This document shows, in pieces, positions 12,613 to 64,000 of a DNA stretch of 64,000 bases; position 1 is the stretch's first letter; every line of letters begins with the position of its first letter. The stretch lies in the NCBI GenBank assembly GCA_047495785.1, contig JBLDXI010000046.1, positions 1,116,001-1,180,000 on the forward strand, read 5' to 3'. A program made the position numbers and the translations under genes. The notes under the pieces are model-generated. The model made no database searches and had not been told where the DNA came from. It saw only the letters and a program-made list of their open reading frames with translations. The stretch comes from Lepidodermella squamata (lineage: Eukaryota; Animalia; Gastrotricha).

Positions 12613-15600
12613 TTATTCTAGAACTCCGTGAGATTCCAAAATTTTCACGATTTCTGTGCGTTTCAAGGTCTTCGCCATTGCAAGTGGGGTGGTCTTTTCG
12701 CGATTACCAGCCGTTGCAAGACCAGGATAGCGCAGGAAAAACTTGACTCCTTGAGGCCAGTCCCTCTCAATAGCGATGTGCATTGTCGTGTTATCGCAGT
12801 TCAACACGTCACGTTGGACAGGATGTGTGCCTTTTGAAACGAAATAAGCCACTAGATTCAAATTGCGGGCATGAACAGCGGCAATAAATGCAGATCGGCC
12901 TGATTTATCCGTAACATCCACAGGACAGCCGAATTCCTCGACCAACATTTTAGCAATTTCGAATGAATTGTTGTTCACAATTGCGTCGCGACGGGACACA
13001 TAATGCAAGGCGTACGAGCCAGTATCACGATGAATAGGATTTTTGGCCAGGTTAGGATAAGCAACCAAAATGCTTCGAACAACATTTAAATCTGAATATT
13101 TGACAGATTTTCTGAGGGCCCGTTCGATAACTCCCGTTTTTTCGACGTCTTCCTTTGACGTGTTTTTGGCGAAATCAAGGAAAAACTCGACAATTGGTGC
13201 TGTACCAGTCGCAACAGCTTTGTCAAAAAGAGTATCGCTTCTTTGGTACATGCAAATTGGCGTGAATACGCCACGGTAAACGCCATCATTCGGGGCAGGT
13301 AGTTGAGGGAAAACTGCCTTAATCTTTGCAAGATCGCGGTTAGAGATAGCATTCTCAAGTTCGAAAATCCAGGCGAGCTTCTGAAACCAAAGAAAAATAT
13401 GAAAATCGCCTACGATTGAAGCAAAACTTAGGTGTATCACCTCATCATGACTGTAGAAAATGTCTGATCCACGGTGGCACTGGCGGCGGCGAACGTTCAA
13501 GTTTGACATTTCGTGTAAGAAATGCACAAATTTTGACGTCACCAGTTTTGAATAGAAATTGATCTGTCCAATGGACGTCGAGTAATCTCCGACCTTACAA
13601 AATCAGATTAAAAAAATACTTAATGCCACTCTGATGCCACTCACTCTAGAGAGCTCGTCGCCAATACGTAATCGAAAAGTTGCAATGTCATCCAGGCTTG
13701 TATCTAGAACTGACTGAGAAATCAACTGCTGGGCATCCCGTGCGAGCTCATCATTAGCCTCAAGAGTCAAATTATCTTCGGCTTGCTTAATCATGGCGGC
13801 TGCATGATCTTGAACTTGCTGCATCCATCGAGCTTTATCATGATCAATCGCCTTCAAAAACCCATCTTTGAGAGATTCAACGAAGCTATCGATTTTTTCG
13901 TTTGTTTTTAAAACTTCCGAGTTGATGTCACGAATCCAGCCTTTCATTTTAGTCTCGTCACTTACTTCCTTTACTTTATCGGCGATCTTAACGAAAATAA
14001 GAATGCAAACGTGCCACAAAAGATGAATTTGGTTCTTACTAAAACATTCGTTATACACTTTTCTATCGTGCACATTGGGCATTATTATATAGTGTGCACG
14101 ACGGCCGTGCACGATGAAAATGTCAGTCTCACTTTTGTCAGGCTTTAAAAATCATTTCGGTCGATTTTAAAAATAACCGGGCATAATAAAACGGTTAAAT
14201 TTTATATCAGCATTATCGGGCTAAGGAGGTCTATGTAATGGATCAGATCATTTATTTACAATTTGTCGCGTTTAAAATTTAGCTGTGCACGACGGATCTT
14301 GCACGACCTAGTAAGGACCAGTAATTAAATCGCCGATAATTACCGCGCCCGTACTCAAACATATATAATATAGGGAATAGTGCGCGCACCTTGATTGAGG
14401 TTATTAGCGCGCGCGGGACGCTGTACTCAAACATGAAGCCGTATTTATTACCTTAAAAATCGGTAAAATCAGAAATAATATTTCTTGTTTTGAGATTTTA
14501 ATTTTAATTTTTATTGGACGCGCCTCCTTCGTCGGCGCGAACGCGCTATTTTAATTTCTACCAACTGACCCATCCTTCTCATTTCTACATTTTTGATCTA
14601 TAGCCATCAAGGCCGAGAAGCGTCCAATTGGGTCTGGTTTGTTGCTACTAAAATCGGGAAAATCAGACAAAATATTATTACCTTATTTCGTGTAATTTTT
14701 GTTTAATTTTTTGTGGACGCGCCTCCTTCGTCGGCGCAAGTAATATTTTTAAATAATTATTGGGAGCGCTCGGCGCATTGTTCTTGCGTGTTTGCGGTTT
14801 CATTTTAACTCCTTAATTCAATCTGGGACACGCTCCCTGCGGTCGCGTGTTCGTTTTAAATTGGGTCATTTATTTTCTCTCGTGGCTACCTCATTTTTTA
14901 ATCTGGTTTATTTATTGTCTTCAGGGCCATTGCTTGATAATTATAATTGAGATAATAGGTAAAATCAGGAATAATTTTTTTTTCTGGACGCGCCCCCCTG
15001 CGGTCGGCGCGCATCCCTGTTTTTTCGGGTCATTTATTGTCTCTTTGGCCGCAAAGAAGCGCGTGCGCAATAATAGTGACCTGGGTCATTTAATTGTGTC
15101 AGGTCAATTATCGGAGCGCGCCTCCCTTCGGTCGGCGCGCACGTGCCATCTTCTGGGTTTCGGTTTTTTACCGGGTTGGGAATGTGACCCAGGTCATGAA
15201 ATTATTACGGGAGCGCGCCTCCCTTTGGTCGGCGCGCATATGCCTTTATACAGGGCTTGAGATTTTATTACAGGTAATGGAATGTGACCTGGGTCACGTT
15301 TTTTGGCAGGGCCGGGCGGACGCGGCAGGGGTCTCATTAATTTTACGCGGCAGCCCTATGGAATCCTAGTGGGCTGCCGCTGCGGCTGTCGTGATCAACA
15401 AAAAGGGGTGTTTTCCTCTATTTTCGGAAAAAGTTGAAATTTTCAAAAAATCGCAGAAAATCAACGCTTTATGACAGGGCAATTTGTAAATCAGATTCCA
15501 AGAGACAATTTGCGACTGAATATGGAAAAAATTAGCAAGACGTAAGCACACCTCCACAGCGAATAAGCGGCAGGTCTATTGATGTCTTATCAAATGAAAA

Positions 15601-16757
15601 ATGGGTGTTATTTTTAATAATTGTAATTTTCATATAAATTTAAATAAATTTAACCAGAATCAAATGGACGCTTCTCGACCTTGATGACTATAGATCAAAA
15701 GTGTAGAAAGAGAAGGATGGGTCAGAAAGGCATCCTAGTTATCTATTTTTTTCGTAATTTGGAATTTGCATATTTTACGGCTATTTATAATGGCCTTGTT
15801 CCTTCGGTCAATCTCTACAAATTTGAAATGAAATGATGAAAATAGGTGAAACAATTTCTCTGGCGCCTTGACCTATATTTCGGAATACGCGCGCACTCAG
15901 GTAATTAGCGTGGCCGACTATATTATTGCTGTTAATTATGGGCTGAATTTTATATAATTTTTATCTCGCTGATTTTTCACTCGATTTTCATCGGGTAAAA
16001 TTTGTTAGTCTCCGCTTGGCGAATATTATGTGGCTGCAAATTTTCAATTTTTTTAAATTAAAATTGGGAGAATTATAGCGTTTTGAAATTTTAAAGTACT
16101 GGCATGTGTGAATGACCTAGTGCGTGTGCACGATGGCCTGGTAACAGTCGTGCACACTAATATTAGGCACTGTGCACGAAAAAAAGTGCAAGGTAGCAAT
16201 TTCTTTCTTCATTTTTTCAGCGTGCATAATGCGGCAACCCTCACAGAATCGTTTGCCACAGTGCTTGCAGTCAACGGGGTTTAGTGAAATAGCTAAATGA
16301 AGACACTCGTCTTGAAACGCAGTTTCATCAGGATGTATTCGACCGGCAGGCAACGGCTTCGACTTCTCTACCAAAGCAATGGCACGAACCAAAGAACCGT
16401 TCGGCATCAGAGCTAGAAAATCGAAAAATTCTGGTAGAATCTGCGCACATTTGTTTTCGAAAATTAACCAGCAACGCCATTTTTAGGTAGTTTAGAAACT
16501 ACGCGACATTCCGGACATTCAAAACTCAACTTGTCGGATCGGGTTTTCAAACTTTGGTGGATGCACTTGGAACAAAACGAATGACCGCATGAAGGTAACA
16601 TTCGAGGATTGACGTACAATTCTTTACAAATGGTACATGACATCGACTGCAAAATAAAACGGTTGAAAATGATTGAATGGAGCCTATGAAAGAATAGCAC
16701 TTTTTCGACGTCACTCATTCTAAGCTTCTTTGGTTGCGGCAGCTGTCCTTCATCCAT
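12613..16757 (-). pseudogene. TRIM-ANK gene A, interrupted by the 2.1-kb TIR element
   Basis: Exons 16757-16701 (MDEGQLPQPKKLRMSDVEK), 16646-16469 (RING), 16412-16190 (B-box-like, cut by the insertion), 13986-13645, 13593-13441, 13380-12613 (ankyrin). Frames are otherwise open. Confidence 0.85.
14053..16189. mobile_element. Non-autonomous TIR element, copy 2 (~2.14 kb, inverted relative to copy 1)
   Basis: Reverse complement of 3746-5786 with one extra ~95-bp internal unit (~15115-15210). Flanked by TT and AA. Confidence 0.9.
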
Positions 16758-17700: not shown

Positions 17701-19726
17701 TCAATCAAGAACTCCGTTAGATTCCAGGATTTTCACGATATCGACACGTTTCAAGTTCTTCGCCATGGCAAGTGGGGTGATCTTTTCGCGATTAACAGCC
17801 GTTCTCAGCCCAGGATATCGCATCAAATACTGCACGCCTCGAACCCAGTCTTTCTCAACAGCGATGTGCATTGCCGTATTGTCATGGTTTGCTATGTCAC
17901 GCTGCAGTGGCTGAATGCCTTTTGATACGAAGTAAGCAACCAAATTCAAGTCGCAGCGATAAACCGCCGGCAGTTGCACGGATCTTCCTGATCGGTCCAA
18001 GACTACCACTGGTGAGCCGAATTCCTCAACAAGAAGTTTCGCCATATCCACGGAATCATTGGACAACACAACACAACGGCTTGAAACGTAATGCAGGGCA
18101 TACGAGCCAGTTTCGCGATGAATAGGGGTTTTAGCCAGGTTAGGATAAGCCTTCAGAATGCAGCGAACAACATCCAATCGGGAAGATTTGATAGATTTCC
18201 TCAGGGCGCGTTCAATAACGCCCGTTGGTTCGAGATTCTCTTTCGAAATGTTTTTGGCGATATCAAGAAAAAACTCGACAATTTTGGCTTCGCCTCGATC
18301 AACAGCTTTTTCAATTAGCGTTCCATCACTTCCATACAGCCAGGACGCCGTAAATAATCCTTTGAAAACGCCATCTTGCGGAACAGGCAGCTGATGGAAA
18401 ACCGCTTTGACTTTCTCAGGATCGCGCTGTGAGATGGCAGTCTCGATTTCGAAATATCCGGCGCGTATCTACGAGAAATAAACATTTCGGAAATAATCAA
18501 ATAAGTCAAATAAAACGTCAAATAAAAAAAGAAACCCTTTTATACCTTGTCAATGTCTCCAAAACTAACGCCGGGCCGGTTCTGAAGACGAACTTCGGTA
18601 TTCGCGATTTCGTGCAGTGATTTTGTGAATTTCGATTTTAAAAAGCACGAATTCAAGTGGATTTTGCCAATAAAAGACGAGTAGCAATCGACCTGTAAGA
18701 ATTCCAGCCTAATCATATTACTTTCCAAACTTTCCTAGAATACCTTACCCTAAAGCGCTCATCTTGAAGGCAAGATCGAAACTCTACAATAGCATCCAGA
18801 CTATCATCCAAGACTGATTTCGAGATGATCTGATCGGCTTCTCGTAAAATTTTATCATCAGCCTTCAGTGCCAAATTGTCCTCGGCTCTTTTTGTCATTG
18901 ATTTGGCCGATTCTTGAACTTGCTTTTTCCACTTAGCAGTAACATCCTCAATCACTTTGCAAAAATCTTCCTTAAGCGATGCAACAAAGCTATCGATTTG
19001 GTCGTTGGCATTGGCGATCTCCGAGTTGACTTCGCCAATCCAGCCCTTCATTCTCGCCTCGTCACTTACCTCCTTTACTTTCTCCACGATCTTGACGAGA
19101 ATACACATGAACGCGATATAGGCAAGCGACAAAAATCTTACGTAAGACTTCATGGTAATAATTTCTTTTTTCAACTTTTCAGCGTGCACAACGCGGCAGC
19201 CTTCACAGAATTGTTTAGAGCAATGTTCGCACTCTACCAAATCTGTCGAAATCACCAAGTGTGGGCAGTGATCTTCATTAGCAATTTCATAATCGTGTGC
19301 CCGGATAACTGCCAGTGGAGGTAAAGGCTTCTCGAGCAACTGAATCGTCCGAATCAGAGACACGTTTCGCATAAGATCTGCGAAATAAAATATCTCAAAA
19401 AACTGGTTTGGAAATTATACCAAAAAACTAACCACTGACGCCGTTTTTGGGTAGTTTAGAAACAGTTCGACATTCGTTGCATTCGTAATTGGTTTTATCA
19501 GGTCTTGTTTTCATAGCTTGGTGGATGCATTTGGCACAAAAAGAATGACCGCAAGCAGGCAAAATTCGAGGATCTGCATAAATTTCGTGGCATATGGCAC
19601 AGGACATTGACTTGAAAGGAAAATGTTATGATTGATGTGAAACATAATGAAAATTACCACCTTTTCAACGTCACTCATCTTCCGCTTTTTTGGCTGAGGC
19701 GAATCTCCGTCATCCACAATTTTCAT
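17701..19726 (-). CDS. TRIM-ANK gene B (RING, B-box-like, coiled coil, ankyrin repeats)
   Basis: Exon 1 MKIVDDGDSPQPKKRKMSDVEK; RING CAIC...CGHSFCAKC...CNEC; B-box-like CPH...CEHC...FCEGC...H; ankyrin exon 18468-17701 open in frame. Closest to gene A. Confidence 0.85.
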
Positions 19727-19864
19727 ATTAAAATAACAAGTCTAAAAATGAAATTTAATTATAAATACAGTTTAGGACTCATTCGAATCGTTTATGACGA
19801 TTCGAAGCTAAGGAAAAATTTTCTCAATCTGCTATAAACGAGAAGCTTTGCACCACTGCTTCCA

Positions 19865-20165: not shown

Positions 20166-20249
20166 TCTTTTTTCCTGAAGCTCATAGGAACAAATCCTCT
20201 TGCTTCAAGAACTTGCTTTGTGTTATTCAAATCAATTACATTGTCATGT

Positions 20250-20560: not shown

Positions 20561-22529
20561 CCAAGAAGTCAAATTTAGCCCAAACGATTGACCATACTCT
20601 GGAGTTCAAGCTAGTATACAAGTATAATTCGCTTAAAATCTAATAAGGGAAAAACGATAGCAACGATGAGTTTATATAATAAAACATAGTACAGCATCTA
20701 CATAAGATTGATAATTGATAACAATCAGATACAACAATGATAGAAAGACCAGCTCCATTGGATATTCAGGTTACTGCAAAATTCCATAAAGCTGGAAAAT
20801 CTTTATAATATTGTTACGATTGAGACGTTTTGCGAGCATTAGTGGGGTGTAACCAAGACACATTACAGTGGCAAGTTGCGGATATTTCTTCAAAAATTCC
20901 TCCACGCCCTCTTTCCAATCCTCAGCGGCAGCAATGTGCAAAATCGAGGAGCCGTTGTAAGTTGGATCAAACGCAATAAGGGGCATGAAGCCTTTCGATA
21001 AAAAAAAATCAACCATCCTCAAATTGTGATTTCTAGCCGCCAGAATTAGAGGCGATCGACCATACAAATCAACAACGTTCAACGGAGCAGCATATTCTTC
21101 GACCAGCATTTTCGCAGTGTCAATCGAATAGTTTCGCTTCGCGGCGATGAGTATAGCGGAATAGTATTTTTGTTTGACAAGAACTTTTTGAGCGAAATTG
21201 GGATAGAAGGCGAGGATTGCCCTAGCAACGTCGGTTTTACCACCACGAACCGCATCGACAAAACCGTGCTCGATAAAACCGCAATTGTCGGTATATCCCT
21301 CCTTAGCAGCGATTTCGAGGAGGAATTTCATGATTTCGCCGCTGCCGTTTTGAACGGCCTCGTAAAGTTCATATTAGCCGACCCTTCAATGTTATTTTCT
21401 TCGAAAATCAGCGAGGTTGTAATTTCATTTTCCGGAGCTGGAAATTGCGAAACCAAATTTTTTACCGCTTGCAAATCATGTTTAGAAATTGCTCGGTAGA
21501 TCTGGCGAAGTAGAGCATTTTCCTAGAAATGACTAAAAATTTGAAATTATGCGTAAATTTCCCCAAAAAACTAACATTGTCAAACTTTTCATCCATGTAG
21601 TCTTGGTTTTCGGCTAGTTCGACATTCAACCTCTCGATTCGCTTCAAAGCATCCGTTAATTCGAGCTGGACATTAGTACAACAGAAAGCGATATGCCCAA
21701 TATAGGGCGACGCTTGCAGTGCCTATCAAGGAAAATTTCTAAATATTTCAAATTCCAAGGGATATGATTTCTCACGTTTTCCCGCTCAGCTTCAAGGCGG
21801 GACAACAAGTCGGCAATTTCGTCGAATTCCAAGTCTAAAATTGACTTTGACGCCATTTCTCTGGCCTCTTCGAGAACAGTTTGGTCGATTTTGACTGGCA
21901 TGTTCTCAGCGACTACCAGCCGCATTTGCTCTGAGGCTGCGGATAGCTGTCGCTTCCACCTCGCTTTACCGTTTCTCAGTGATTTCGTAACCTCAGAGAA
22001 TAAGGCGGAAAATTCGTCTATTTTCTTATTGGCGTTTTCAATATCAGCTTCAGCTTCGTGATTGCGAGAATCCGTTTTATCATGCGACGTGTCAGCGATG
22101 CAGTCGGCTATCTAAATTTTATGAGAATTAAAATGAATCAATTCGATTTGAAAGATTCTGGTAACTCAATTGAGAATAATTTAAACCAGCGACTATCAAG
22201 CCCCAATTTTCCTTCCAGATAGCCATGTTTTGCGCCCGACAGAGGCCTGCCTATAATTTCTATTGCATGTGGCCAGATAGCACTTTCGAGACTAATTTTA
22301 CTGCTTAGAAAATGTACGATGACCTTCAAAAATTTCGGAGCGACTTCAAGAAAAGATTTACCACGATTTACAATCGTTATGGTACCATCGTATTTACAAT
22401 CGGCTCAGTTGACAACTCGTTTCGACGCATTAACATTTCGACTCGATGGCTTTGAAACTGGATTACAGGCCGCTACCAATCGCACCTTTTAGGAGCCGAA
22501 ACGCGGCAAATTACCGACCGCTTACAGTG

Positions 22530-22685
22530 GTGTTCGTTCTGATACCGGAACTTCTCGATCGGATAGGCAAAGCGAAAGTGTTTACTCGGCTTGATGTGAA
22601 AAATGCTTACAATATACTTCGGATCCGGGACGGTGATGAGTGGAAAACAGCGTTCCGTTCAAGATATGGCCTCTTTAATATCTGT
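22530..22685 (+). mobile_element. Ty3/gypsy (Tf2-like) reverse transcriptase fragment
   Basis: [46 protein letters not shown]. Confidence 0.9.
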
Positions 22686-22739
22686 CATACGATTCGGGTT
22701 GAACAACGCAATAAGCAGCCAAATAATCAATGGCCTACT

Positions 22740-23275
22740 CGTTGGCAACGCGGAAAAACAACACTTGTGGAGTACCGTAGGTAGTTTTATTAGAAGCCAG
22801 TACTGGGTATAGAAAACGGCATTTTTTTCTCATACCGTAATTTCGTGCGCCGCTGTACTTGTATTAGTCGAAACGGTTACCCCATCGCGGACTTGAAGCC
22901 TTGATGAAATGCAAAGTTATATTCGTAGTAAACAGCTAGAAAAGCCCGCTTTCTTATTGCTGACAGTGTTGAGAGTTGCGATGAGTGCGTGAAACATTTT
23001 CCGAACATGTTTGACTATAAAATATTGACGGCCTATCACAACAGTCGTTTTTTACTCATCAAACGTTACCATCGATGGCGTTTCCAATGGGAGTACGCAG
23101 CCGTGCTGTGAACACCATCGCTAATGACATACACAGTAACCGTTTCGACTAATACAAGTACAGCGGCGCACGAAATTACGGTATGAGAAAAAATGCCGTT
23201 TTCTATACCCAGTACTGGCTTCTAATAAAACTACCTACGGTACTCCACAAGTGTTGTTTTTCCGCGTTGCCAACG
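22740..23275. mobile_element. MITE/foldback element with ~140-bp TIRs and 4-bp TACT TSD
   Basis: 22740-22880 is the reverse complement of 23136-23275 (one indel in a T/A run). TACT at 22736-22739 and 23276-23279. Confidence 0.75.
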
Positions 23276-24196
23276 TACTGCAACAACGGCATGATTTTAT
23301 CTGGAATAAGCAAGAACAATAACATCACAAGTTATAACGAGAACTGACTGTTCAAAGAATAGCTATGCGCTTAAGGAATACCCAAAAATCCGACGTAAGG
23401 TAGTTTTGTGCTTCTCATTCCAACTTTTCTTCTGTTCAGACTTTTCTTGAGCGACTTTATGATGATTACCAACGTTCTCCCATCTTCGAACAAGAAAAAA
23501 ACGCCCTTGATACAAATGGATGATACGTGCCGAAATCGACCAATTCTTTAGTACCGGTCATGACAGTGATCGGGAGGCTTCACAAACTATCGATCATTTC
23601 AATATGGTATCAAGGCGTAACCGCAACTTCCGCTATGTGACAGACGCCCCCGGAATCGTCAAATACGGCTGGGCTTTCATCTTGATGAGTGATGAATGAT
23701 GATCGGAATGCGAATAACGCTGCTCTTGGTATGATTTGACTTTTTTATCACTGATATATGATTTTATTCTGATTTACAAATAAAATAAAATCCACAGCTC
23801 TGCATCTAACTTAACTCTGTATCAACTTTGTGATTTGGTGGTACTTCCGCGCCGCAAGATCCGCACGTGTATATTTCCGCACAGGGGTCATTAGTGCAAG
23901 TATATTCCATCTTAATAATTACATGGCTAAGGAATGTTTGGTCTGCGCGGATAAACCATGCGCGGAAGTACCAATGCACCAACTCTCAGTCTAAATCTAA
24001 CGAATACGGATAAAATTTCAGATGTGTATTAAATCTCGTTTCAAGTATGTTCCCTCACAATAGCATAAATATTGTGCAAAAAATAAGAGCGTCGGTTAAA
24101 ACGAAAATTCGCGCAAGTAAGGATTGTTTCAATTAATTCCAAAGATTATCACTACATCTTACATCTAGTCAAGCATTCAGGCCTATCGCAGCCAAC

Positions 24197-26102
24197 ATGC
24201 AGCAATGTAGTGAGCGATGGTTAGTAACATGCGGTCTAGCTACGACATTTGCGCTATGGCTGGTAACCTGCAGATTAGCTGAATTTTATGAACTAAGAAA
24301 CGTCATTTTTGCGGTCGAAAAAAGCGATGACACCGTCTTCCAGGAACCGTTGCCACCAATAAATTCACAAATAGCCGTAACTGACAATGCAACGTGCTTT
24401 CCTATCGTTTCTTTGAAGACGTGTAACGTTGGGACACTCCATCAACTATCATCGCCGGCTGAAAATCTGCGAAATTTCAGCGCCATAGCAGCGGCAAATG
24501 CAGAAGACGAGTTGGCCATAGCCGAAAACATTAAATCGATTTACATCGCGAGAATGATGGAGAAATTTGCCTCAAATTGCCGGCCTAAAGTGATGGCATA
24601 CTCGTGCGATTCCCCGGGTTGTCGAGGATGGGGCGGTCGTCTTCGAGGCATTGTCACTGCGTTCTACTCAGCCCTACTAACCGACTCGCTGTTCCTCATC
24701 GACGCAACGCACCCTGTGGATTTAGGCAGCTTTTTCGCGATTAATTCGGAATTTTACGGTTTCAGCGGCAAGTCGGACTATCACTGCCTGCTGCGTTATA
24801 GCCGGCTGCCTATTTATCGATCAATGGATTTCGATGAGCCGGTTCGATTCGCTCTAACTGAATGGTTCGAAACGTATATAAAAATGGTAGCGATTACGAT
24901 GGCGTTAGGCTGCAGACGAATACGATGGTAGCGGTGGAACAGGGCTTGGAGACGGATTTGTTTGCACGCCTCGCTGATGTCTATGGATTGCGATTTTATA
25001 ACTATCTGCAGCTAGTTTCTGCAGCGCTTCGCGTCATTTTTGATAGGCCGCAGCCGCGCCTTGAAACTATGGTGCAAAATTCATTGCGCCGAGTGGCCGC
25101 AGCATCTCACACGACTTCAAATGCAACGATAGGTGATTTTTCAGAATAATTTCATATTTATTTTAGTTTAGGACACCATTAAATCTCAAATTGATCACAA
25201 AATGAGGAATTTGAATAATAGCAATCCTTACACTATCGAAATTACCAATCTTCGAAAATTGTATCAATTTTTAGTGATTTGATCAACAATTTCCTAACTA
25301 AATCAAAAGATAGAAGCAGATTCGAGTTCCTCGATTTTCTTCACTTTTCCTGAGAACGAACTCACTTACAATTTATTTAATTGAGGAGCGTCAAAGAGAG
25401 CGGCTAATCAGAACTTCCCGATTTTATCAGATTTCAATGGTATGATCGAACTTTTTGTATCAAGTCTAAATTCGAAGAAATTCATCGCAATAGCAAGCGG
25501 CTGAAAATTGCCGTTCCTATACTCTTAAATCCCAAGTCCTATGTTTAAGCTGAAAATTAGCAGTAAAATTGATTGTTGGAAACTCAAGTCCGGTTTTTTC
25601 GATCCAGAAGTCAATGTTTTTTTGTATAGGCATACATTTGCGCATCGACACGAACCGAGTCATCGCCAAAATGATTCCCTGCTTCGCCGATGAAGTAGGC
25701 AGAATCATAAAAAAGCACAATTTGGAGCGGCCTGGCGTTTACATTTCAAGCGACAATGCGAAAGCTACAGAACGCCTTAAACGGCTGCTATGGCGTGATT
25801 ATAAAATCACAGCGCTCGAGCCTGACGACGGCGAGGTTTGGCACATAGACGTCATGGATAACGAGGTGGCAGCGAAGTGGAGCGCCGAAACTCGCTGGGA
25901 AAAGGCTGCGGCGACATACCGCGACTGGCTGGTTCTGACGCGCATGGACTATTTGATCATTAGCCGGAGTGGCTTTTCGGAATTCGCGTCGTACTACTCG
26001 CGCCGGCCAACGCGGCGCTTTATACACAAGCAACGCCACAAATGTACCTTTGAAGATTACAACTTTCTGCCTGATCTTCTTTTTGACATAAAAAATTCTT
26101 AA
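24197..26102 (+). pseudogene. Fucosyltransferase-like (GT-B; alpha-2/alpha-6/O-FucT superfamily) type II membrane glycosyltransferase with one frameshift
   Basis: N-terminal TM; GWGGRLRG; after splicing intron 25133-25629: TIGIHLR (motif I), VYISSDN (motif II), DWLVLTRMDYLIISRSGFSEFA (motif III). An extra TA at ~24875-24880 shifts the frame between ORFs 24197..24931 and 24862..25149. Confidence 0.75.
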
Positions 26103-26967
26103 AATGAAAATTGGAACGCAAAACACATTTCTGGAGAGAAACTGAGGAGAATAAAAAATGCGCTTATTGAAATTTCCGTTTCTAAAAGTGAGTAAAAAAG
26201 CAGGAAATTATTAATTTTTCAATTTAATCAATTTCAATTTCAATTTAATTTTCAAATAATTAAAAATGGATTGAAATTAAGAGAAAAGGAATTTAAGGAA
26301 AAAATTTACCTGCTTTTGCATTGCCAAAATTTCTTTCTTCATTTTCTCAGCGTGTAAGAATTTGCATCCTTCGCAAAATTCTTGGTCGCAATGCTTGCAT
26401 AGCTGTGGATTTTGTGACACGGCCAGGTGAATACACCGATCTTCCGAGTCCGGTCCCGCACAAGCTTTCTTAGATGCCTTGAACGAATCAATCGCCCGGG
26501 CCAGCGGGAAATTTCGAATTAATACTACGAAAACACGAAAATTAAGATTAATCGAAAAAATAGACGACTACAACTTTTCGGGTCGCCGTTTGGAATCGCT
26601 GACATAGCTCGACATTCCGGGCATTCAACGGCGCCTATTGTTTTCGAAGCTTGGCCAATCATGTTAATGCACTTGAGGCAAAATGAATGGCCGCATGTTG
26701 GCAAATTTCTTGGGTCCAAGTAAAATTCATGGCAAATCGAGCATGATAAAGACTAGAAGAAAAAATTAGTGAAAAATATTGAAAAATTTAGAAGGTACCA
26801 ACCTTTTCCACATCGCTAATTTTCCGCTGTTTTGATGGCGGTGAGCTCATCATTCACTCTAAAAACTCTAAAAAATAAAACAAAAATGTCAAGTTTTGAA
26901 AGACAAAACTTTTAAACGAAAGGCAGTGCCATCGACAAAAACGAAATCGAAAATTCACACAAAAATG

Positions 26968-29034
26968 TTATTCGAAAATTCCTGAAAGCTCAAAAAGTTT
27001 GACAATTTCGTCACGCTTCAACGATTTTGCCAAAGCTAAAGGAGTGCAACCTTCCCGATTTTTCATGCCAGCAAGTTGCGGGTATTTTTCCAAAAGATAT
27101 TCAACACCGTGCTTCCAGTCCTCGCCAACGGCGATATGCAACAAATTTCCATCGAGATAGGACATATCAATGACGAAAGGACTGAGGCCCTTTGAAATCA
27201 GATATTTGACCGTCGGCAGACTGCCGCATCGAGCAGCTAAAACCAGCGCAGTTCTGTGATATTTATCGACAGCATTGATCGGAGAGGCGAATTCCTCCGC
27301 CAGCATTTTTACGCATTGCTCAGAGTAATTTTCTTTCGCGGCAAACAGAAGAGCTGTGTAGCCCTTGTTCACTGCAACAACGGCCTTAGCTAGAACCGGG
27401 TAATAGGACAAAACCACTCGAACAACTTCTAGCTTGTTCGCTTCGATGGCTTTGGCCAAGCCGCGTCGAACCATGTAGAATTTCCCCTTGGTTTTGTCGT
27501 AGGCTGAGATTTTGAAAAAATAATCTACAACATCAGAACGGCCTTTGGCAATGGCTTCGTAAAACATGGTTTCTGCGCCTTCGACTTGGGCTAAATGCTC
27601 GTCGAAAATCGGCGACATAAAATTCTCATCCCGCTCGGGCAATTTCGAATGCAATTCCTTGACTTCATCTAAAGTCCCGGATGAAATGGCTTTGTATAAC
27701 TGGATAATCAAAGCACATTCCTAAAAAAAAATTAAAAATTAATTTACGCCAAAATATATGAAGAAATAAACCAACTTCATCGGTTTCCTCTTCGTTTTCC
27801 CACTCATCGCTTTGTAGGCAGACATCAATTTCTTGCATTTCTTTCAAAATATTCGAAATTTTGACTTCGGCCGTAGCGCAACTAAACATATTATGCCCGA
27901 TATAGGACGAGCGTGTAGATACCTTATAGTAGAAAAAATTAATAAATGTCGCGTATTTTTTTAATGAGCAAAATTACCTTTGTCCACATTTCATCAATGA
28001 CAATTCGCGAATTCGCAATATCGTCCAGTTTCACGTCCAAAACTGATTTTGAAGCCAAATTTCGAGCTTCCGACAAAACAGTTTGATCAAGTTTGAAATC
28101 CATATTTTTCTGAATTTTTCGGCGCATTTTCTCAGCATTTTTCGATATCTCCTGCTTCCATTTCGCTTGGGCTTGGTCAATTGACTTTAAGAATTTAGCC
28201 TTCATACATTCGACGAATCGATCGACTTTTTGGTTAACGTTCTGAACGTCAGTTTCAACTTCTTCGAGGCGCGACTCGAGTTTCGTCTGATCGGTCAAAT
28301 CATTGACATGTTCCGTTATCTAAAATTTTAAAATTAATTTAAATTTTTTTTTAATTTTAAATTTGAAAAATTTGAAGAGCATTAAAATTTCAGGAAATAA
28401 AAAAAAAATTTAAGGAGGAATCTTTCAATTAATTTAAAAATTGTGAAATTAATTTTGTAAAGCCTCACTTTTTCGGTGTATTCGGCGATTTCCTTCTTCA
28501 TTTTTTCAGCATGCAAAAATCGGCAACCTTCGCAAAACTGTCGATCGCAATGCTTGCAAAATTCTGGAGCGGCTGAGACCGCCAGGTGGATACATCGATC
28601 TTTCTCCGAATTTTCCCGCGCAAAACGGGGCCGAAATTCTGTCGCATTTTCGGCTTCTTTAATCGATTCGATAGTTCGAACCAGGGGGAAATTTCGCAAT
28701 AACTCTGAAAAATCTATTAATCCTACAAAAAATGTTGAAATTTCTGTATTTTTTACTTTTCACATCGCCTTTGGGAATCGCAGAGACAACACGACATTCC
28801 GGGCATTCGACAATAGCCTTATTTGCTCGAACTTTCACGGCAAGGTGAAGACACTTCAGGCAGAAGGCGTGACCGCAAGACGGCAAATTCCGGGGATCCA
28901 AGTAGAGTTCGCAGCAGATCGAGCAAGACAGTGACTAAAATATGTTCACAATTTTTTCTGGGGATCAAAGCCGTGTTTATTCAAACCTCTTTGACATTGT
29001 TCACTTTGCGTAGCTTTGAAGGCGGAGAACTCAT
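26968..29034 (-). CDS. TRIM-ANK gene D (~567 aa)
   Basis: Exons 29034-28987, 28934-28757, 28704-28469, 28319-27978, 27922-27776 and 27720-26968. All introns are GT-AG with consistent phases (0,1,0,0,0). Confidence 0.9.
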
Positions 29035-29784: not shown

Positions 29785-31322
29785 TCACACATGAACCAAA
29801 TAATCATGAAAATTGTTCGCTTTCAGCTGTTCAAGCTTCCTTCTGCGGGTCTCGTGAGGCGAATATCGAACTTCCAAGTCTTTCAGCTGTTGAATGGCAT
29901 CACATATATTGCGCTTGACGCGTTCGCTGCCGAGCGAAATTCGGCCCATGCGCATTGACAGCTCGTCCACCTTAAAAAAATTCAGAAATTTTCATTAAAT
30001 TAGCGTAAATAAGGTAAAAAAAGCGAAAATAATTTTCAGAATAACTAAAAACAGTGGACAATTTCCAGTGGTTGTGAAATATTTAGGAATTTTTTACTGA
30101 AAATGGTAAGGATAATTTTTTACATCAGGGTGTAAATTTTAGAGATCTCATTAGTTTTATTGAAATTTTGTTGAAATTATTTAATCGTAAAATTATTTAA
30201 AAAATAAATAGTTAGCCAAACATATTTTAATAATTCTCTGAAATTCCCTGAAAAATCCGATTTAAATTTATAATTTGTTATCTGATTTTCAGGCTTCGAA
30301 AAAATTGTTTAGTCCGAACTTATCGATAAGTAAAAAAGTAGGCTGACATTTCGAAAAAAATACCTCTTGAAAGGCGTCATCGATACGAGTTCGCATCGCA
30401 GCAATATCGTTGAGCTTGTAGTCGAGAACAGATTTCGAGGCAAGAGCTTGAAATTCATCCATCACAGTCGCGTCGAATTTGAACGACGCGTTTCTCTCCA
30501 CATCTCGTTTCATTCGATCACCAGCCGCTGTTACTTGCTGCTTGAATTTGACTCTCGCCTCATAGGCAGCAGTCGAAAATTCATGTTCGATAAAATCAAG
30601 CAAACTGTCGATTTTGGTGTTGGCCAATGCCATTTCGGCTTCGATTTCTTGAAGCCACTTGTCGTAATTTTTCTTATCGGTTAGCGCAGCAACTCGGTCG
30701 GTAACCTTTTCATTTAATTTTCAAAATAATTTTCAACACAAATTTGAGATTTATACCTTGATACGAATTTCGGTGATTTCTCGCTTCATTTTTTCGGCGT
30801 GTTTGACCTGGCAGCCCTCGCAAAATGCTTTGTTGCAGTGGTTACACTCCTCTGGCTTGGGCGAAATAGCTAAATGGATGCACAAGTCACTCTTTGACTC
30901 GTTAACGTCCTTCCAAACAAAGACAGGACAATTTTCAGGTAGCTTCAACGAATCGACAGTTCGAGCTAGCGAGATATTTCGCAGCAAAACTGCGTTGGAA
31001 AAAATTAGGATTTTTTTTGCAAAAATTGTTAAAACAAACGTTTCACGTCACTATTTGGGACTTTTGACGTGGCTCGGCATTCCGGGCATTCAACGATCGA
31101 CTTGCCATTATGGTTTTTCGTCACCTGATAAAGGCATTTCAGGCAGAACGAATGGCCACATGTCGGCAAACAACGAGGGTCGGTGAAATATTCGTGGCAA
31201 ACGAAACACGAATGAGACTGAAATCAATTGAATCAGAAGGTTAGAAAATGCAAGAAAATATTTTTTCTCACCTTTTTGACATGGCTCATTTTGTGGATTT
31301 TTCGAGGAGGCGAGCCACTCAT
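29785..31322 (-). CDS. TRIM gene E: RING, B-box-like and coiled coil only, ankyrin exon absent (truncated gene or pseudogene)
   Basis: Exons 1-5 are homologous to genes F and G (MSGSPPRKIHKMSHVKK...). Exon 5 runs into unrelated sequence and stops at 29785. No ankyrin exon before gene D. Confidence 0.6.
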
Positions 31323-36000: not shown

Positions 36001-36530
36001 TGCTTGACCTGGCAGCCCTCGCAAAATGATTTATCACAGTGTTTACATTCCTCCGGGTTCGGCGAAACAGCCAGGTGGATGCAGGCATCGTTCAGCGACT
36101 CGTCCTCTGCCGTCCACGCGTAACCGGACGCCTTTTCTGGGTCTTTCAACGATTCGATCGTTCGAGCTAGAGAAATATTTCGCAGCAAGACTATGAGATA
36201 GGAAAATAATTTATCAAAAATTCAATAAATCAAAGCGAATACATTTGACGTCCCCGTTTGGAATTTTTGAAATGGCTCGACACTCCGGGCATTCGATTGT
36301 CGACCTGTCTGTGCGACTTTTGACGACGTAATGAAGGCATTTCAAGCAGAATGAATGGCCACACGTCGGCAAAAAACGCGGGTCGATGTAATACTCTTGG
36401 CATACAGGGCAAGAATGTGACTGAAAAATTGTAGATAATGCATATATGAGGGTAATATTCAGCGCTCGAGTCATACTCTTTCGACGTGGCTTAGTTTTTG
36501 AATTTTTCGAAGAGGAGAATCACCCATCAT
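33069..36530 (-). CDS. TRIM-ANK gene F
   Basis: MMGDSPLRKIQKLSHVER; RING ORF 36214..36474; B-box 35952..36188; intron 3 34836-35957; coiled coil 34458..34835; exon 5 within 33858..34079; ankyrin ORF 33069..33794. Confidence 0.85.
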
Positions 36531-47301: not shown

Positions 47302-49377
47302 TTACTGAAAAATTCCATTAAGCTCAAAAATCTTGATAATATCGTCACGCTTGAACGATTTTGCAAGCATTAGCGGGGTGGTACCGCGCGACTTCAACGT
47401 CGCAAGTTGTGGATATTTCTTCAAAAATTCCACCACGCCTTTGACCCAGTCCTCAGCGATGGAGACGTACAAAATCGACGAGTGGCTAACAGATGACTCA
47501 ACATTGTGAGTAAGAGGCGAGAGGCCTTTTGAGATGAAAAATTCAACCATTGCCAAATTTTGATTGAGAGCAGCTAAAATCAGAGCTGATCGACCGTGCG
47601 AGTCAACCAATTTTACCGGAGCTCCGAATTCTTCGATCAGCATTTTTGCCGTATCGATCGACCAGTTTCTTCTCGCGGCGAGGAGTAAAGCAGTGTAATT
47701 TTTTCGTTTAACAACAATTTTTCGAGCGAAATCGGGATAGAAGTCGAGGATTGCCCTAACAGCGTCGGTTCTATCACCACGAACCGCGTCGACAAATCCT
47801 TGCTCGATGAAACCACTATCGTCGGTATATCCTTCCTTTGCGGCAATTTCCAGGAGGAATTTAACAATCTCGCCACTGCCGTTTTGAACGGCCTCGTAGA
47901 ACATGTTCATAGCGCAGCCTTCAATGTTATGTTCTTTAAAAATCAGCGAGGTTGCTAGTTCATTTTCCGGGGCAGGAAATTGACCAATCAAATTTTTGAC
48001 AGCTAGCAAATTATTTTTAGACATTTCTCGATAGATCTGGCGAAGTAGAGGTTTTTCCTATGAATGAAGACAGTTAAATTTTGCGTAGAATCCGAAAAAA
48101 CGTACATCGTCAAGCTTTTCATCCTTGTAAAACTTGTTTTCGGCGAGTTCGACATTCACCGCATCGATTCGCTTCAAAGCATCCGTAAATTCGAGTTTAA
48201 CATTAGCACAACAGAAAGCGACATGGCCAACAAATGATGATGATTGGTTAGTCTAAATAAAGCAAAAAATTATCAATCAAATCTGAAAATCTACCAGCTT
48301 TTTCCTTACGTTTTCCCACTCCTTTTCCATGCGTGACAACAGATAGGCTATTTCGTCGAATTTCAAGTTCAAAATTGATTTCGATGCGATTTCTTTCGCA
48401 TCGTCGAGAACGGTTTGATCGATCTTGACCGGCTCATTACTGAACGCTCCCTGTCGCATTTTCTCTGAAGCTACCACGAGTTGCCGCTTCCACTTGGCTT
48501 TTGCGTTAATCAGACATTTTTCAAATTCGAATGATAGAAAGCCGGCGAAATCGTCCACTTTTCTATTCGCCTTTTCAACATCAGTCTCAATTTCTCGATG
48601 GCGTGAATCCAGTTTTTCTCTGCCTGCCAATTCTGCCTCGTAATGAGTCATCTGAAATTACGCCGCTATTATGACATCCTTTTTCTGAATATTCGATATA
48701 ATCAAAAATAAATTCCCCGATTTTTGCAATTTTTTAAGATGGAATTCAAAATTTAGTTCCGCAAAAAAGGGATGCATAGTATAGTAAAATCGTGGGTACC
48801 TTCTTTTGCAACGTTAAAATTTCGTTCTTCATTTTTTCGGCGTGTAAAAATTTGCATCCTTCGCAGAATTCCTGCCGACAATGCTGGCAAAATTCTGGTT
48901 TTTGCGATAAAGCCAAATGAATACACCGATCTGCTGCTGTCGTTGTAGATGTCGCACATGACTCGGTGGAACAAGATTTCGTAACATCTTTGAAGGAATC
49001 GATTGCCTTGGCGAGCGGGAAATTTCGAATCAAATCTTGAAATTGAAAATTATTAAGAGTATTATTTTCTCAGATAATAAAGATGACTACAACTTTTAGG
49101 GTCGCCGTTTGGAATCGCGCAAATCGCTCGACATTCCGGGCACTCTACGGAGCCTTTAGTTTTCGATGCTTGGTAGATTAGATGTATGCATTTCAGGCAG
49201 AAAGAATGGCCGCAAATCGGCAAATTACGTGGGTCCACGAAAAATTCATAGCAGATCGAGCAGGACAACGACTGGGTTATGAAAGAAAAAAGTATATTTC
49301 GATTTTTTCACCTTCTGAAAATAACCTACATCCTCAACTTCGGCCATTTTTCGCTGTTTCCGCGGTGGTGTGGTCAT
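47302..49377 (-). CDS. TRIM-ANK gene H
   Basis: MTTPPRKQRKMAEVED; RING 49062..49268; B-box 48746..49033; coiled coil 48277..48651; ankyrin 47302..48024. Confidence 0.88.
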
Positions 49378-50116: not shown

Positions 50117-50330
50117 CTATCTTTTAACAACAATTTTTCGAGCGAAATCGGGATAGAAGGCGAGGATAGCCCTAAAAATGTCCGTGTTACCACTGCGAAC
50201 CGCATCGACAAATCCTTGCTCGTTAAAACCGAGGCTGTCGCTACATCCTTCCTCAGCAGCCATCTCCAGGATCTCTACTGCTGTTTTGAACGACCTCGAA
50301 AATGTTCGTAGCACACCCTTCAATATTCAA
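50117..50330 (-). pseudogene. Ankyrin exon fragment of the TRIM-ANK family
   Basis: EQGFVDAVRSGNTDIFRAILAFYPDFARKIVVKR matches gene H and the 8212-8963 pseudogene. Confidence 0.8.
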
Positions 50331-50847: not shown

Positions 50848-52937
50848 TTATTCAAAAACACCATTAATCTCAAAAAGACGGACAAAATCGCCAAGTTTCA
50901 TTCTCTTAGCTATCTCTAGAGGAGTAATACTGGCAACACCAGTCTTAATATCGGAACATTTAATGGTAGCAAGATGGGGAAATTTTTTCAAAAACTCTTC
51001 CACGCCTTCCTTCCAATTGTAAGCCACGGCAATATGCAAAATAGTCGTGTTGTTGAAAGAAGGGTCAGTTGTCAGTGGTGAAGAGCCCTTGGAAATGAAG
51101 AATTCAACCATTTTCAAATTCCGGTTTCGAGCAGCTAAAATGAGAGGTGAACGGCCATGCAAGTCAATTACATTAATCGAAGCCTTAAATTCTTCGACCA
51201 GCATTTTTGCAGTATCAATGTGATAGTTGCGCTTCGCCGAAATATGGATAGCAGAATATAGCTTTTTCTCGACGATAATTTGCCGAGCATAATTAGGGTA
51301 GAACCTTAGAATAGCCCGGGCAACGTCGGTTTTACCTCGTCGAACAGCCTCGACAAAACCTCTTCTGATTAAACCTGAATCATCAGTATATCCCTCCTTC
51401 GCAGCAATTTCGAGAAGGAATTTAACAATTTCACCATTGCCGTTAATAACTGCCTCATAAAACATGTTAATTGCTGCTCCGTCAATATAATTTTGTTCAA
51501 ATATCAGCGAGATTGCGATTTCATTTTCTGGAACAGGAAATTGAGAGATTGAACCCTGCACCGCTTGCAAATTATTTTCCGAAATTTCTCGATAGATTTG
51601 GCGAATGAGCGCGTGCTCCTAATATCAGTTAAATAAGAATTACAAATCAATGAGAAAATCGACCAAGCAAGAAACAACGAACTTTGTCAATTTTTTCGTC
51701 TATTTCGTCCTCCCTATCAGCCAGTACGACATTCAATGAATTAATTTCTTTTAAAACATCTTTGAAATCGAATCTTAGGTTATCACAGCTGAAAGCGACG
51801 TGGCCAATATATGACGATGTCTCACTCGCCTGGAAAATCCACCTTAAAAATTAGAAAATAAAGTAACTCGAGATATTTCTTACATTTTCCCACTCAGTTT
51901 CCATGCGCGACAACAAGTCGGCGATTTCGTCAAATTCTAAGGTCAAAACAGATTTCGATGCGATTTCTTTCGCCTCGCCGATAACACTTCGATCGATTGC
52001 GATCGATTCGTTATCAGTAACTCGCATTCGCATTTTTTCTTCCGCCACCGATATTTGTCGATCCCACCTAGCTTTCGCGTTTTCCAGAAATTTCGAAAAT
52101 TCGGATGATAGGAAAGCGACGAAATCGTTCACTTTCTTTTTAGCATTTTTGACGTCGCATTCGATTTCCACAAGTCGACAATCCCGAGTTTCTTTACTCG
52201 TCACATCGGCCACGTGGTTAGTTATCTGATTTCCACGAAAAAAAATCAGGAATTGAGTTGGCGTCAAGCTTCCCAAAACATATGGTCCAAAAATGTTCCC
52301 AACAATTAATTTTTGTAGAGGGAATTTTTCAATCAGTTTTGTGGCGCAGTCAATATATTTCGATACAAATAAAGTAAAATAAAAGTATACCTGCATTTCC
52401 AATGACATTATTTTGTTTTTCATTTTTTCGGCGTGTAAGAATTTGCATCCTTCGCAAAATTCCTGACCGCAATGTTTGCACTTTTCTGGATTTTGCGACA
52501 AGGCCAGGTGAATACACCGATCTTTCGGGTTTGGTCCTGGTAGAGATTTTAAAGAGGAATCTTTGACGGAATCAATCGCCCGGGCCAGTGGAAAATTTTT
52601 GATCAAAACTGATCAAAAAATAAATAAATTCAATAGTCATCGACAAATTCGAAAAGACAACTTATTGGATCGCCGTTCGGAACTTTGGATGCCGCTCGAC
52701 ATTCCGGGCATTCAACGGAGCCTTTAGTTTTCGATGCTTGGCAAATACGGTGTATGCATTTGAGGCAGAAAGAATGGCCGCAAGTCGGCAAATTACGTGG
52801 ATCTATGTAAAATTCATGGCAGATCGAACAGGATAGCGACTGGATGAAAGAAAAATTATTGCATATTTCGAACATTTCCAACCACCAACCTTCTCAACTT
52901 CACTCATTTTTCGCTGCTTCTGAGGTGGTGAACTCAT
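50848..52937 (-). CDS. TRIM-ANK gene I
   Basis: MSSPPQKQRKMSEVEK; RING 52630..52881; B-box and coiled coil in 51851..52606; ankyrin 50848..51570. Confidence 0.88.
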
Positions 52938-53026
52938 TTTTATTCAAATTATTTCTAAAATTGGAAATTTATTGCTTAAGATTCAAACAAAATGGCCGAA
53001 ACTGATAATAAAACAACAAAAAAGAG

Positions 53027-59587: not shown

Positions 59588-59940
59588 TTTGTAAAAATAA
59601 ATTCTAAATTCAGGCAAATTTGAAGTCGCATCGAAGTGGCTCACGCACTCATAATATTTTGTTGATTCAAATTATGATATTTGGCAGATTCGCGCGATAT
59701 TCGGCGAAAATTATGAGAGAAAGTTTTACTTGTTCGACGAGACATGAAAAGCAGCAATGATATTTTTTACGGTAGGAACGAAATCATATTGGAGTCACAA
59801 GCTCAACGAATAAAATTCGACGGCTAAAAAAAAGAAGAAAAATGTTCGGTAAAAATGTCAGATTTGCCCGAGCATGTTATAAAAAAAATGACTTCATCTA
59901 TAAATCAAACACCGAGAAAACAAGGTCAAATTCAGCTGCA

Positions 59941-62900: not shown

Positions 62901-63208
62901 AGCGCAGCATTCAGAAAATGATTTGTGGCTACATGTGACCAGAGAAATCTCCTTGGGGTCACAGCCATGAGATTTCACAGAATCGACGATTAGCGATTGG
63001 AGAACTCGAGGGATTGAAGCTAGAAACTCAGGATTTTCAATCGAACAAGAATCGGCCGACTTGCTGTTGCGGCAACCCAAATCACTATGATCCACCTTAA
63101 TCAAAGGATTCTGAAAAAAATCGGAATATTAGGGTGAAATTAACATATCAAAAATACCTGGTCACGTTTGCATAATTTTGAAATTTTTCGAGGCGGCGAG
63201 TCAGACAT
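59941..63208 (-). CDS. SOCS-box protein M (~465 aa), tandem paralogue of L
   Basis: Exons 63208-63158, 63110-62486 and 60662-59941. Exon 1 (51 nt), exon 2 (625 nt) and all phases are the same as in L. SOCS box PKTLRSCARSAV...IKNLDIPAKMQEFL. Confidence 0.75.
60915..60975 (+). mobile_element. Ty3/gypsy protease-region fragment
   Basis: IVLGMPWLKQPNPSIN motif. Confidence 0.55.
61173..61760 (+). mobile_element. piggyBac transposase remnant
   Basis: MSRDRFKQIVCFLH; DEQMAAFKGRTTLKQYMPIKPVKRGLKF...GYI. Confidence 0.85.
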
Positions 63209-63285
63209 TTTTTATTAGAAAAATTCTAGGAAACAAAATCATGAACAATTTAAGCTATTAACAATTTAAAGTTAAGCTAGAACAA

Positions 63286-64000
63286 TTATTCAAAAATTCC
63301 GTTTTCTTCGAAAGTTTTGATGATCAGCCGACGCTTTAGGTTCAAGGCCAGAGCCATGGGAGAAAAAGCCTGCCGATTCTTCATTGCAATGAGCTCGGGG
63401 TGATTTTTAAGAAAGAACTGCACACCTTTAACCCAATCCTCCTCAACAGCGATATGCAATACGGTGTAATCAAAACAGGCCTCGTCGCCTAAAAACGGAT
63501 TTGCGCCCTTTGAAATGAAATATTTGACTAGTTCGAGGTTTTTGCACCAAGCAGCCAAGTGGAGGGGTGATCGGCGGAATCTACTCAGCGAATTGACTGA
63601 AGCTCCGTATTTTTCAACCAACCGATTTGCAAGGAACGAGAAGCCACTTTTAGCAGCTAAATGCAATGCGTTGAAGCCATTTTCTTGATCTAAAGTATTT
63701 TTCGCTAATTCAGGGTAATAGCCCAAAATACAAATCGCTTGGTGGAAGTAGTTTTTCTTGATGGCTTTACACAGTGATTGCGTTACAACTTCAACTTTCG
63801 TATCGGATTTAACACTTTTCGTAAGTTCAAGGCACTGACCAACTATTGAGGTTTCGCCTCTATGAGCAGCTTCTTCGAACAAACTTCTCTCGTTATTTTC
63901 AATTTTTCCAAACAAGCACTGCTCTCTTGAATCCTCTGAATCGGCAATCAAATCCAAGAATCTTTGAAAGCCGTAGTAATCTCCTTCCTGTATTGCCCGT
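63286..64000 (-). CDS. TRIM-ANK gene K, ankyrin exon only (5' part lies outside the window)
   Basis: Ankyrin ORF with family-typical HIAVEEDWVKGVQFFL and C-terminal ENGIFE. Confidence 0.8.
   Translation of the reverse strand, partial: RAIQEGDYYGFQRFLDLIADSEDSREQCLFGKIENNERSLFEEAAHRGETSIVGQCLELTKSVKSDTKVEVVTQSLCKAIKKNYFHQAICILGYYPELAKNTLDQENGFNALHLAAKSGFSFLANRLVEKYGASVNSLSRFRRSPLHLAAWCKNLELVKYFISKGANPFLGDEACFDYTVLHIAVEEDWVKGVQFFLKNHPELIAMKNRQAFSPMALALNLKRRLIIKTFEENGIFE

Follow-up and report, generated by a model that had tools for sequence, protein, structure and literature searches.

A tandem array of TRIM-like RING genes with C-terminal ankyrin domains in the gastrotrich Lepidodermella squamata

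A 64,000-nucleotide (nt) stretch of the Lepidodermella squamata genome (contig JBLDXI010000046.1 of assembly GCA_047495785.1, positions 1,116,001 to 1,180,000; hereafter the window, G+C ~40%) carries a minus-strand row of exons encoding RING fingers and exons encoding ankyrin repeats. It thereby raises the question of whether these exons form single genes and, if they do, what kind of ubiquitin ligase such genes would encode. A mechanical list of open reading frames (ORFs) holds ten minus-strand ORFs of ~240 amino acids (aa) between 12.6 and 64 kb and another at 8.3 kb, with the common tail '...TPLxLAKxLKRxEIVKIFExxGIFE'. The original prediction, made from the letters of this stretch, had read the locus as a family of E3 ligases laid out as RING, B-box, then coiled coil (RBCC), in which ankyrin arrays act as variable target sensors, plausibly for innate or antiviral defence. 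The explanation that we consider probable is an old tandem family of single-chain TRIM-like RING ligases, whose ankyrin surfaces would select substrates.

To locate the family we ran tblastn first with gene H's exons, later with every protein of the family, and found a tandem row of 11 minus-strand genes (A-K) between positions 12613 and 63999. Within the window, 10 RING, 10 Cys/His-module, 10 helical and 10 ankyrin exons were recovered, each exon type recurring in the same order at ten places (A-J). Splice sites were set by hand from the sequence between the tblastn matches and then checked by script, gene H being read first, base by base. The models follow a six-exon plan: the first exon is a basic mini-exon, the second encodes a C3HC4 RING and the third a Cys/His zinc module, and these are followed by a helical exon of 114 aa, a linker exon and an ankyrin exon of ~250 aa. 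The predicted set of 11 co-oriented models with one exon plan, ten of them with RBCC-type exons, was recovered. Eight models are open (A, B, D, F, G, H, I and J), encoding proteins of 557-579 aa. The genes, with their subfamilies in brackets, are as follows:

12613..16757, minus strand: gene A (A/B); 579-aa model, open only with a GTGCCT donor; 2.2 kb insertion in intron 3
16757-16701, 16646-16469, 16412-16171, 13986-13645, 13593-13441 and 13380-12613, minus strand: exons of gene A
17701..19726, minus strand: gene B (A/B); intact, six exons, 578 aa; PQPKKRKM in the mini-exon
20771..26853, minus strand: gene C (C/H/I); disrupted, exons 1-5 open
26968..29034, minus strand: gene D (D/J); intact, six exons, 567 aa; stop 114 nt before the gene C ATG
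29800..31322, minus strand: gene E (E/F/G); exons 1-5 only, without an ankyrin exon
31322-31272, 31217-31040, 30989-30757, 30705 to about 30364, and about 29982 onward, minus strand: exons of gene E
33069..36530, minus strand: gene F (E/F/G); intact, six exons, 567 aa; intron 3 of 1.1 kb, intron 4 of 0.5 kb
41480..44345, minus strand: gene G (E/F/G); intact, six exons, 557 aa; Pfam RING families on its 5' open frame
47302..49377, minus strand: gene H (C/H/I); intact, six exons, 568 aa
49377-49330, 49271-49094 and 49035-48800, minus strand: exons 1-3 of gene H (basic mini-exon, RING, Cys/His module)
48651-48310, 48252-48106 and 48057-47302, minus strand: exons 4-6 of gene H (helical, linker, seven ankyrin repeats)
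50848..52937, minus strand: gene I (C/H/I); intact, six exons, 567 aa
53027..55202, minus strand: gene J (D/J); intact, six exons, 566 aa; stop 89 nt before the gene I ATG
63286..63999, minus strand: gene K (own lineage); ankyrin exon only, upstream exons lying beyond the window end

Do these exons belong to one gene? The models could be artefacts, in which hand-fitted splice sites tie separate ankyrin genes, or RBCC pseudogene debris, into a plan. What favours such an artefact is the manual choice of sites, together with read support that covers three junctions, in short contigs of a run (X1) labelled RNA by guess. These contigs cover genes H and I at a depth of 4-33 and the 1.4 kb between them at 0-2.5. 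They skip 48058-48105, which is exactly intron 5 of H and joins the linker to the ankyrin exon, and 51830-51883, which is exactly intron 4 of I, with minus-strand GT..AG borders in both cases (listed as junctions 48057/48108 and 51828/51883). In addition, a loose end at 52841 reads, in reverse complement, as the last part of exon 1 of I and marks the exon 1/2 junction. Both skips occur in run X1 only; at the H junction, one side measures 22 nt and one letter does not match. Three predicted junctions in H and I were thus seen, in a run whose RNA label is a guess.

Against an artefact stand the eight copies that are open across five introns. Intron phases are 0/1/0/0/0 throughout and all introns are GT..AG, mostly of 48-65 nt (48-148 nt in H); exon 2 measures 178 nt in all models and exon 4 measures 342 nt in 8/8 intact models (336 nt in C). 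Because frames, phases and exon lengths are kept despite saturated silent sites, we take the exons to form one gene. The linker-ankyrin junction seen in H and the matching RBCC and ankyrin trees (below) agree with this, as does the variation found: 22/33 exonic variants, nearly all of them from run X2, are synonymous and 11/33 non-synonymous, and five non-exonic variants cluster in intron 4 of I. An artefact is therefore very improbable; the genes are real, spliced and kept by selection, and the predicted splicing of the ankyrin exon to the RBCC-like exons holds, with RNA-type junctions and matching trees behind it.

In run X2, whose organism code differs from that of X1, the locus (47200-53199) is present both as near-identical contigs and as contigs 90-95% alike. 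The divergent contigs may represent a second haplotype, paralogues or a sister strain.

We built maximum-likelihood trees separately for exons 1-5 and for the ankyrin exon. Both gave the same topology, (A,B), (E,F,G), ((D,J),(C,H,I)) and K alone, with support of 96-100, and so recovered the subfamilies A/B, C/H/I, D/J, E/F/G and K that had been proposed. Since the RBCC and ankyrin trees are congruent, whole genes were duplicated, and the adjacency of C to D and of I to J suggests the copying of a block of two genes. Ankyrin-exon shuffling or gene conversion was considered for the lower ankyrin synonymous divergence (dS) in D-J and A-B, and finds no support from the congruent trees. By pairwise Nei-Gojobori estimates of non-synonymous divergence (dN) and dS, made separately for the RING plus zinc, helical and ankyrin parts, dS of the closest pairs was 0.8-3.0 (D-J), 0.8-1.3 (H-I), 0.9-1.9 (A-B) and 1.4-2.3 (F-G), saturated or nearly so, and paralogue dS overall ranged from 0.8 to above 3. 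The family is, as its trees and distances indicate, old and tandemly duplicated.

What kind of ligase would these genes encode? On gene G, Pfam matched zf-RING_UBOX and zf-C3HC4. None of the eight C3HC4 ligands varies among the ten RING exons, and 9/10 keep the Arg of CPECR. A profile of the ten RING exons had TRIM2 as its best solved match (3.4e-9), followed by TRIM5, RNF4, TRIM25, TRIM72, TRIM69, TRIM56 and TRIM3; as judged from its sequence, the RING is TRIM-type. Exon 3 starts with a helix motif, L-x-R-N-x-x-L-A-R-x-I-[DE], and carries a module that is invariant in all ten paralogues, D-x-C-x-H-L-x2-S-x5-C-x-H-C-x3-F-C-E-G-C-x3-H-A-E-K. Its ligand spacing is C-x-H-x9-C-x2-C-x4-C-x2-C-x3-H, with Lys in the eighth ligand position, and the real B-boxes of metagenomic TRIMs read C-x2-3-H-x7-8-C-x2-[CD]-x4-C-x2-C-x4-7-H-x1-2-[HC], so that the central C-x2-C-x4-C-x2-C spacing is common to both. 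As a yardstick for the B-box position we used an intronless classical TRIM gene on a metagenome contig (L001:648-1586), which has a RING, a true zf-B_box and a coiled coil, lacks ankyrin repeats, and is 25% identical to gene G over 256 aa. The module lies between the RING helix and the helical exon, colinear with the L001 B-box, and has 7/8 ligands at B-box2-like spacing. A language-model neighbour search with the RING-plus-module piece returned RING plus zf-B_box clusters at 0.88-0.91, which we treat as a lead only. This second zinc module looks like a degenerate B-box2 without the last histidine, an identification that is unproven.

Several results weigh against a TRIM-like reading of the protein. 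The zf-B_box family (PF00643) was unmatched on the second zinc module in Pfam at E up to 10, where sub-threshold matches were to IBR in 5/10 members (best 0.0031), AN1 in two and an ANCHR-like B-box in two. A PDB profile search with the module gave no TRIM and only C2H2-finger noise, and hhalign against real B-boxes aligned only the central 16 columns, with 3.6% probability. The AlphaFold model of the module, a mediocre one (predicted local distance difference test, pLDDT, 66; about 80 over the module), folds as a beta-beta-alpha knuckle and had no significant match and no B-box match in Foldseek or VIA, its only small matches being UBZ fingers at Z 2.5-2.7. Further along the protein, a crude test for 3.5-residue periodicity on exon 4 was not significant (z below 2), and in the mini-exon the classical K-K/R-x-K/R nuclear signal occurs in A and B only. 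The family is TRIM-like and not proven TRIM, because no profile or fold search recognises the second zinc module; of the 'B-box-like' label, position and spacing stood, while none of the Pfam, PDB profile, Foldseek, VIA or hhalign searches recognised it.

The same failed and stray matches (IBR, AN1, ANCHR-like, C2H2 and UBZ, the knuckle-shaped model and the low hhalign probability) speak for a family that is not TRIM-derived at all and assembled RING, zinc knuckle, helical region and ankyrin domain independently, with an IBR-, AN1- or UBZ-like module in place of a B-box. Such an origin has to contend with a RING that is closest to TRIM RINGs, with a post-RING helix of the form N-x-x-L-A-x-x-I as in L001, with a module exactly at the B-box2 position whose ligands are spaced mostly as in B-box2, and with the neighbour-search lead, and we regard it as rather doubtful. 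An RBR ligase (RING1-IBR-RING2) was also considered and rejected: the IBR matches are sub-threshold, there is no third zinc domain, and exon 4 is helical, with Cys in 4/10 copies.

Exon 1 reads M-S-x-P-P-x-K-x-R-K-[MLV]-x-x-V-[EK]-[KE] in all ten genes. For this basic N-terminal mini-exon (S-P-P-x-K-x-R-K), 'nuclear localisation signal-like' is a reasonable label but no firmer one, since only A and B hold the classical signal.

Following the zinc module, exon 4 encodes 114 aa, of which 0-1 are Pro and 28-39% are charged, and is colinear with the coiled coil of L001; a PDB profile of this exon gave chance helical matches only. Exon 5, the linker, contains a conserved S-S-[FY]-[IV]-G and a helix-like stretch. 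Together these ~160 proline-poor residues are probably helical, and by analogy with TRIMs they may form a coiled coil and a dimer.

Pfam reported Ank_2, Ank, Ank_3, Ank_4 and Ank_5 on 8/8 ankyrin exons scanned (Ank_2 at 4.7e-14 to 4.8e-29), and SOCS_box was unmatched on all of those scanned. The AlphaFold model of the ankyrin exon, a confident one (pLDDT 88.8; predicted template-modelling score, pTM, 0.87), shows seven helix-pair repeats, and its best structural matches were the FEM1B/C degron receptors (template-modelling score, TM, 0.66-0.70), RNase L, AnkB, gankyrin and the MIB1 ankyrin domain, among at least 500 PDB ankyrin matches with E below 0.001. An Atlas shape search with the same model yielded ankyrin clusters of a generic kind, with none that pairs a RING with ankyrin repeats.

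In the single-chain ligase that we favour, a charged E2 would be recruited by the RING, in which nine of ten copies keep the Arg that follows the final Cys pair (CPECR), and the helical region would make the protein dimeric, as in TRIMs. The ankyrin solenoid, standing in place of the TRIM substrate-binding domain, would hold the substrate as the ankyrin domains of FEM1 and ASB proteins do. Ligase activity, dimerisation, nuclear location and ankyrin substrate binding are inferred. Each subfamily appears to keep its own ankyrin surface under purifying selection, so that the family looks like a collection of ligases with distinct, stable targets, which are probably cellular, and possibly nuclear, rather than like a fast-evolving pathogen sensor.

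How does this layout compare with known systems? Among the closest are TRIM/RBCC proteins, especially class VII TRIM-NHL (TRIM2/TRIM3), which likewise have an N-terminal C3HC4 RING, a post-RING helix, a second Cys/His module, and a long helical region followed by a C-terminal protein-binding repeat domain; tandem TRIM gene families are known too. The family differs from them in its C-terminal ankyrin solenoid and in a zinc module that lacks the last histidine and is unrecognised by B-box profiles. FEM1 and ASB receptors share an ankyrin solenoid of similar size, likely the substrate-binding element of a ubiquitin ligase, but have no RING of their own and dock to Cul2/Cul5 via BC or SOCS boxes, whereas here the RING is in the same chain and SOCS boxes are found in separate neighbouring genes. 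Mind bomb/MIB, plant XB3/XBAT and ANKIB1 are likewise single chains in which a RING-type finger occurs together with ankyrin repeats. In these proteins the ankyrin repeats precede the RING fingers, a tripartite N-terminal layout is absent, and we detected no sequence relationship to them.

A C-terminus of seven ankyrin repeats falls outside the recognised TRIM classes (PRY-SPRY, NHL, filamin, COS-FN3, PHD-bromo, MATH, ARF, TM, none), as had been claimed for this locus. The TRIM surveys bear this out, with no ankyrin class in Sardiello 2008, Boudinot 2011 or Marin 2012; 'ankyrin repeats' is absent from all three and 'ankyrin' from Marin 2012. Within the limits of our full-text searches, no 'TRIM-ANK' or similar term was met and the surveys found contained no ankyrin TRIM class. 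Engineered E3s that carry a synthetic binder instead of their substrate-binding domain, a TRIM21 fusion included, are active and re-targeted (PMC10694607). Such bioPROTACs (DARPin, FN3, nanobody; e.g. TRIM21 with Tn3) resemble the family in joining an RBCC core to an unrelated C-terminal binder, but they are laboratory constructs, whereas the family occurs in nature, is expressed and is maintained by selection. Should the layout function as proposed, it would be a natural counterpart of an engineered self-dimerising RING core with an ankyrin-repeat binder. It would also add an unlisted C-terminal class to the TRIM-like ligases, and would offer 8-10 paralogues per array, with different conserved ankyrin surfaces, for learning how targets are chosen.

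We then turned to distribution. In a clustered protein collection, the 329-aa frame of gene A drew 988 word-sharing candidates (181-576 aa), none of them significant, in a search whose length window and word filter hid most possible full-length relatives. Exact look-ups of 11 ORFs likewise had no match in the collection. An exhaustive search of representatives, for which the ankyrin exon of H proved an unsuitable query, returned giant multi-ankyrin proteins, and two matches of the right length (P0101 and P0146) were pure ankyrin. Metagenome contigs gave nothing with the Cys/His module and, with the RING exon, 30 loci with RING-only matches, in ordinary RING or TRIM genes. Viral contigs gave nothing with either the Cys/His module or the ankyrin alignment, and hence no sign of a viral origin. 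The claim that the family is lineage-specific is compatible with these blank searches, but the searches were blind to most possible full-length relatives.

Are the ankyrin arrays, then, rapidly changing recognition surfaces? The family could consist of innate or antiviral sensors evolving by birth and death, with fast-diversifying ankyrin arrays, as in finTRIMs or TRIM5. In favour of such sensors are the large tandem family with intact, broken and fragmentary members, the adjoining second expanded E3 family with SOCS boxes, and the transposons and Polinton nearby. The divergence data speak otherwise. No closest pair has a dS below 0.8, so the array holds no recent duplicates, and dN/dS was 0.03-0.3 in all three parts and 0.14-0.26 in the ankyrin exon. 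Nor does ankyrin divergence exceed that of the RING or helical parts: among the closest pairs, protein identity was 0.61-0.81 in the ankyrin part and 0.50-0.60 in the helical part, and terminal branches were shorter in the ankyrin tree (median 0.27 vs 0.36). Differences between close paralogues were enriched neither in the inner nor in the outer repeat helices, loops being the most variable, and haplotype or strain variants were mostly synonymous. The genes are kept by purifying selection and the duplicates are old, and this array shows no trace of the fast diversification that one would expect in pathogen sensors, which makes sensors of this kind unlikely here.

Two parts of the original prediction gain no support from these results. 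One is the idea of 'variable target sensors', given the saturated dS, the low ankyrin dN/dS, the lack of enrichment on a helix face, and an ankyrin part that is as conserved as the helical part or more so and no more variable than the rest; the other is the defence reading, all domains being under purifying selection and the duplicates old. As a caution, a large tandem family with pseudogenes is not by itself evidence of an arms race.

The intact, disrupted and fragmentary members that had been described are all present, with eight open models, a frameshifted C, an E without its ankyrin exon, and loose fragments. The status of gene A is uncertain, because its frame stays open only if splicing uses GTGCCT, an unusual donor adjoining a 2.2 kb insertion. 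This insertion in intron 3 (14060-16185) has an imperfect inverted repeat of 28 nt (75% complementary) at its borders; within it lie a second inverted repeat, of 58 nt (90%), and a GC-rich unit of 41 nt in several copies. It probably represents a non-autonomous transposon that now occupies the former donor site. Gene C has a 1-nt frameshift in its ankyrin exon, near 21365-21375, an exon 4 that is 6 nt shorter than in the other genes, and a 4.2 kb intron 3 (22112-26309) with plus-strand ORFs at 24197-24931 and 25569-26102 that have no Pfam match; this stretch represents either a gene nested within C or an insertion that contributed to disabling it. In gene E, exon 5 reads through to a stop, and the sequence up to the start of gene D lacks an ankyrin exon. 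Two further remnants were found:

50120..50327, minus strand: isolated ankyrin-exon fragment; about 70 aa, 72% identity to gene H
8215..11492, minus strand: degenerate extra copy; mini-exon, partial RING exon and frameshifted ankyrin exon, with an ankyrin tail fragment at 11421-11492

The degenerate copy takes part in a segmental duplication (2740-3700 / 10908-11492) comprising the ankyrin tail fragment, the mini-exon, the partial RING exon and part of exon 3, and the RING frames are identical between the two copies. Both the degenerate copy and its duplicated fragment at 2740-3700 lie outside the range given for the family in the original prediction.

Among the neighbouring sequences, two minus-strand SOCS-box genes lie between J and K (55513-63208), with Pfam SOCS_box at 55513-56289 and 59944-60675, each SOCS-box exon being preceded by a Cys-rich exon without a Pfam match (58802-59518 and 62475-63128). 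They start with the mini-exon MSDSPPRKVAKLRKFDP or MSDSPPRKISKLCKRDQ, nearly the same as exon 1 of the ankyrin ligases, and MSDSPPRK is found in both. On the most far-reaching view, a TRIM-derived class that exchanged the usual C-terminal receptor for an ankyrin solenoid, many dozens of genes strong across the genome and sharing a portable MS(D)SPPRK mini-exon with an unrelated SOCS-box family, would form with that family a system of ubiquitin surveillance that is lineage-specific, possibly nuclear, and equipped with a designable repeat-protein receptor; we hold this to be a speculative and improbable extension of the single-chain ligase reading.

The 5 kb spacer between F and G contains two adjacent plus-strand ORFs (38457-39942) that match DUF3504 and Phage_integrase and correspond to a Crypton-like tyrosine recombinase, in the region of highest G+C in the window (0.455). 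Rfam gave no match in the window. Finally, some neighbouring genes are separated by gaps of only 77-114 nt (52938-53026 between J and I, 26854-26967 between D and C, and 63209-63285 between the stop of K and the ATG of a SOCS-box gene), and a T-rich ...AG acceptor-like site lies 8-51 nt upstream of the ATG of every gene; this tight spacing, together with the acceptor-like sites, resembles operons with leader trans-splicing.

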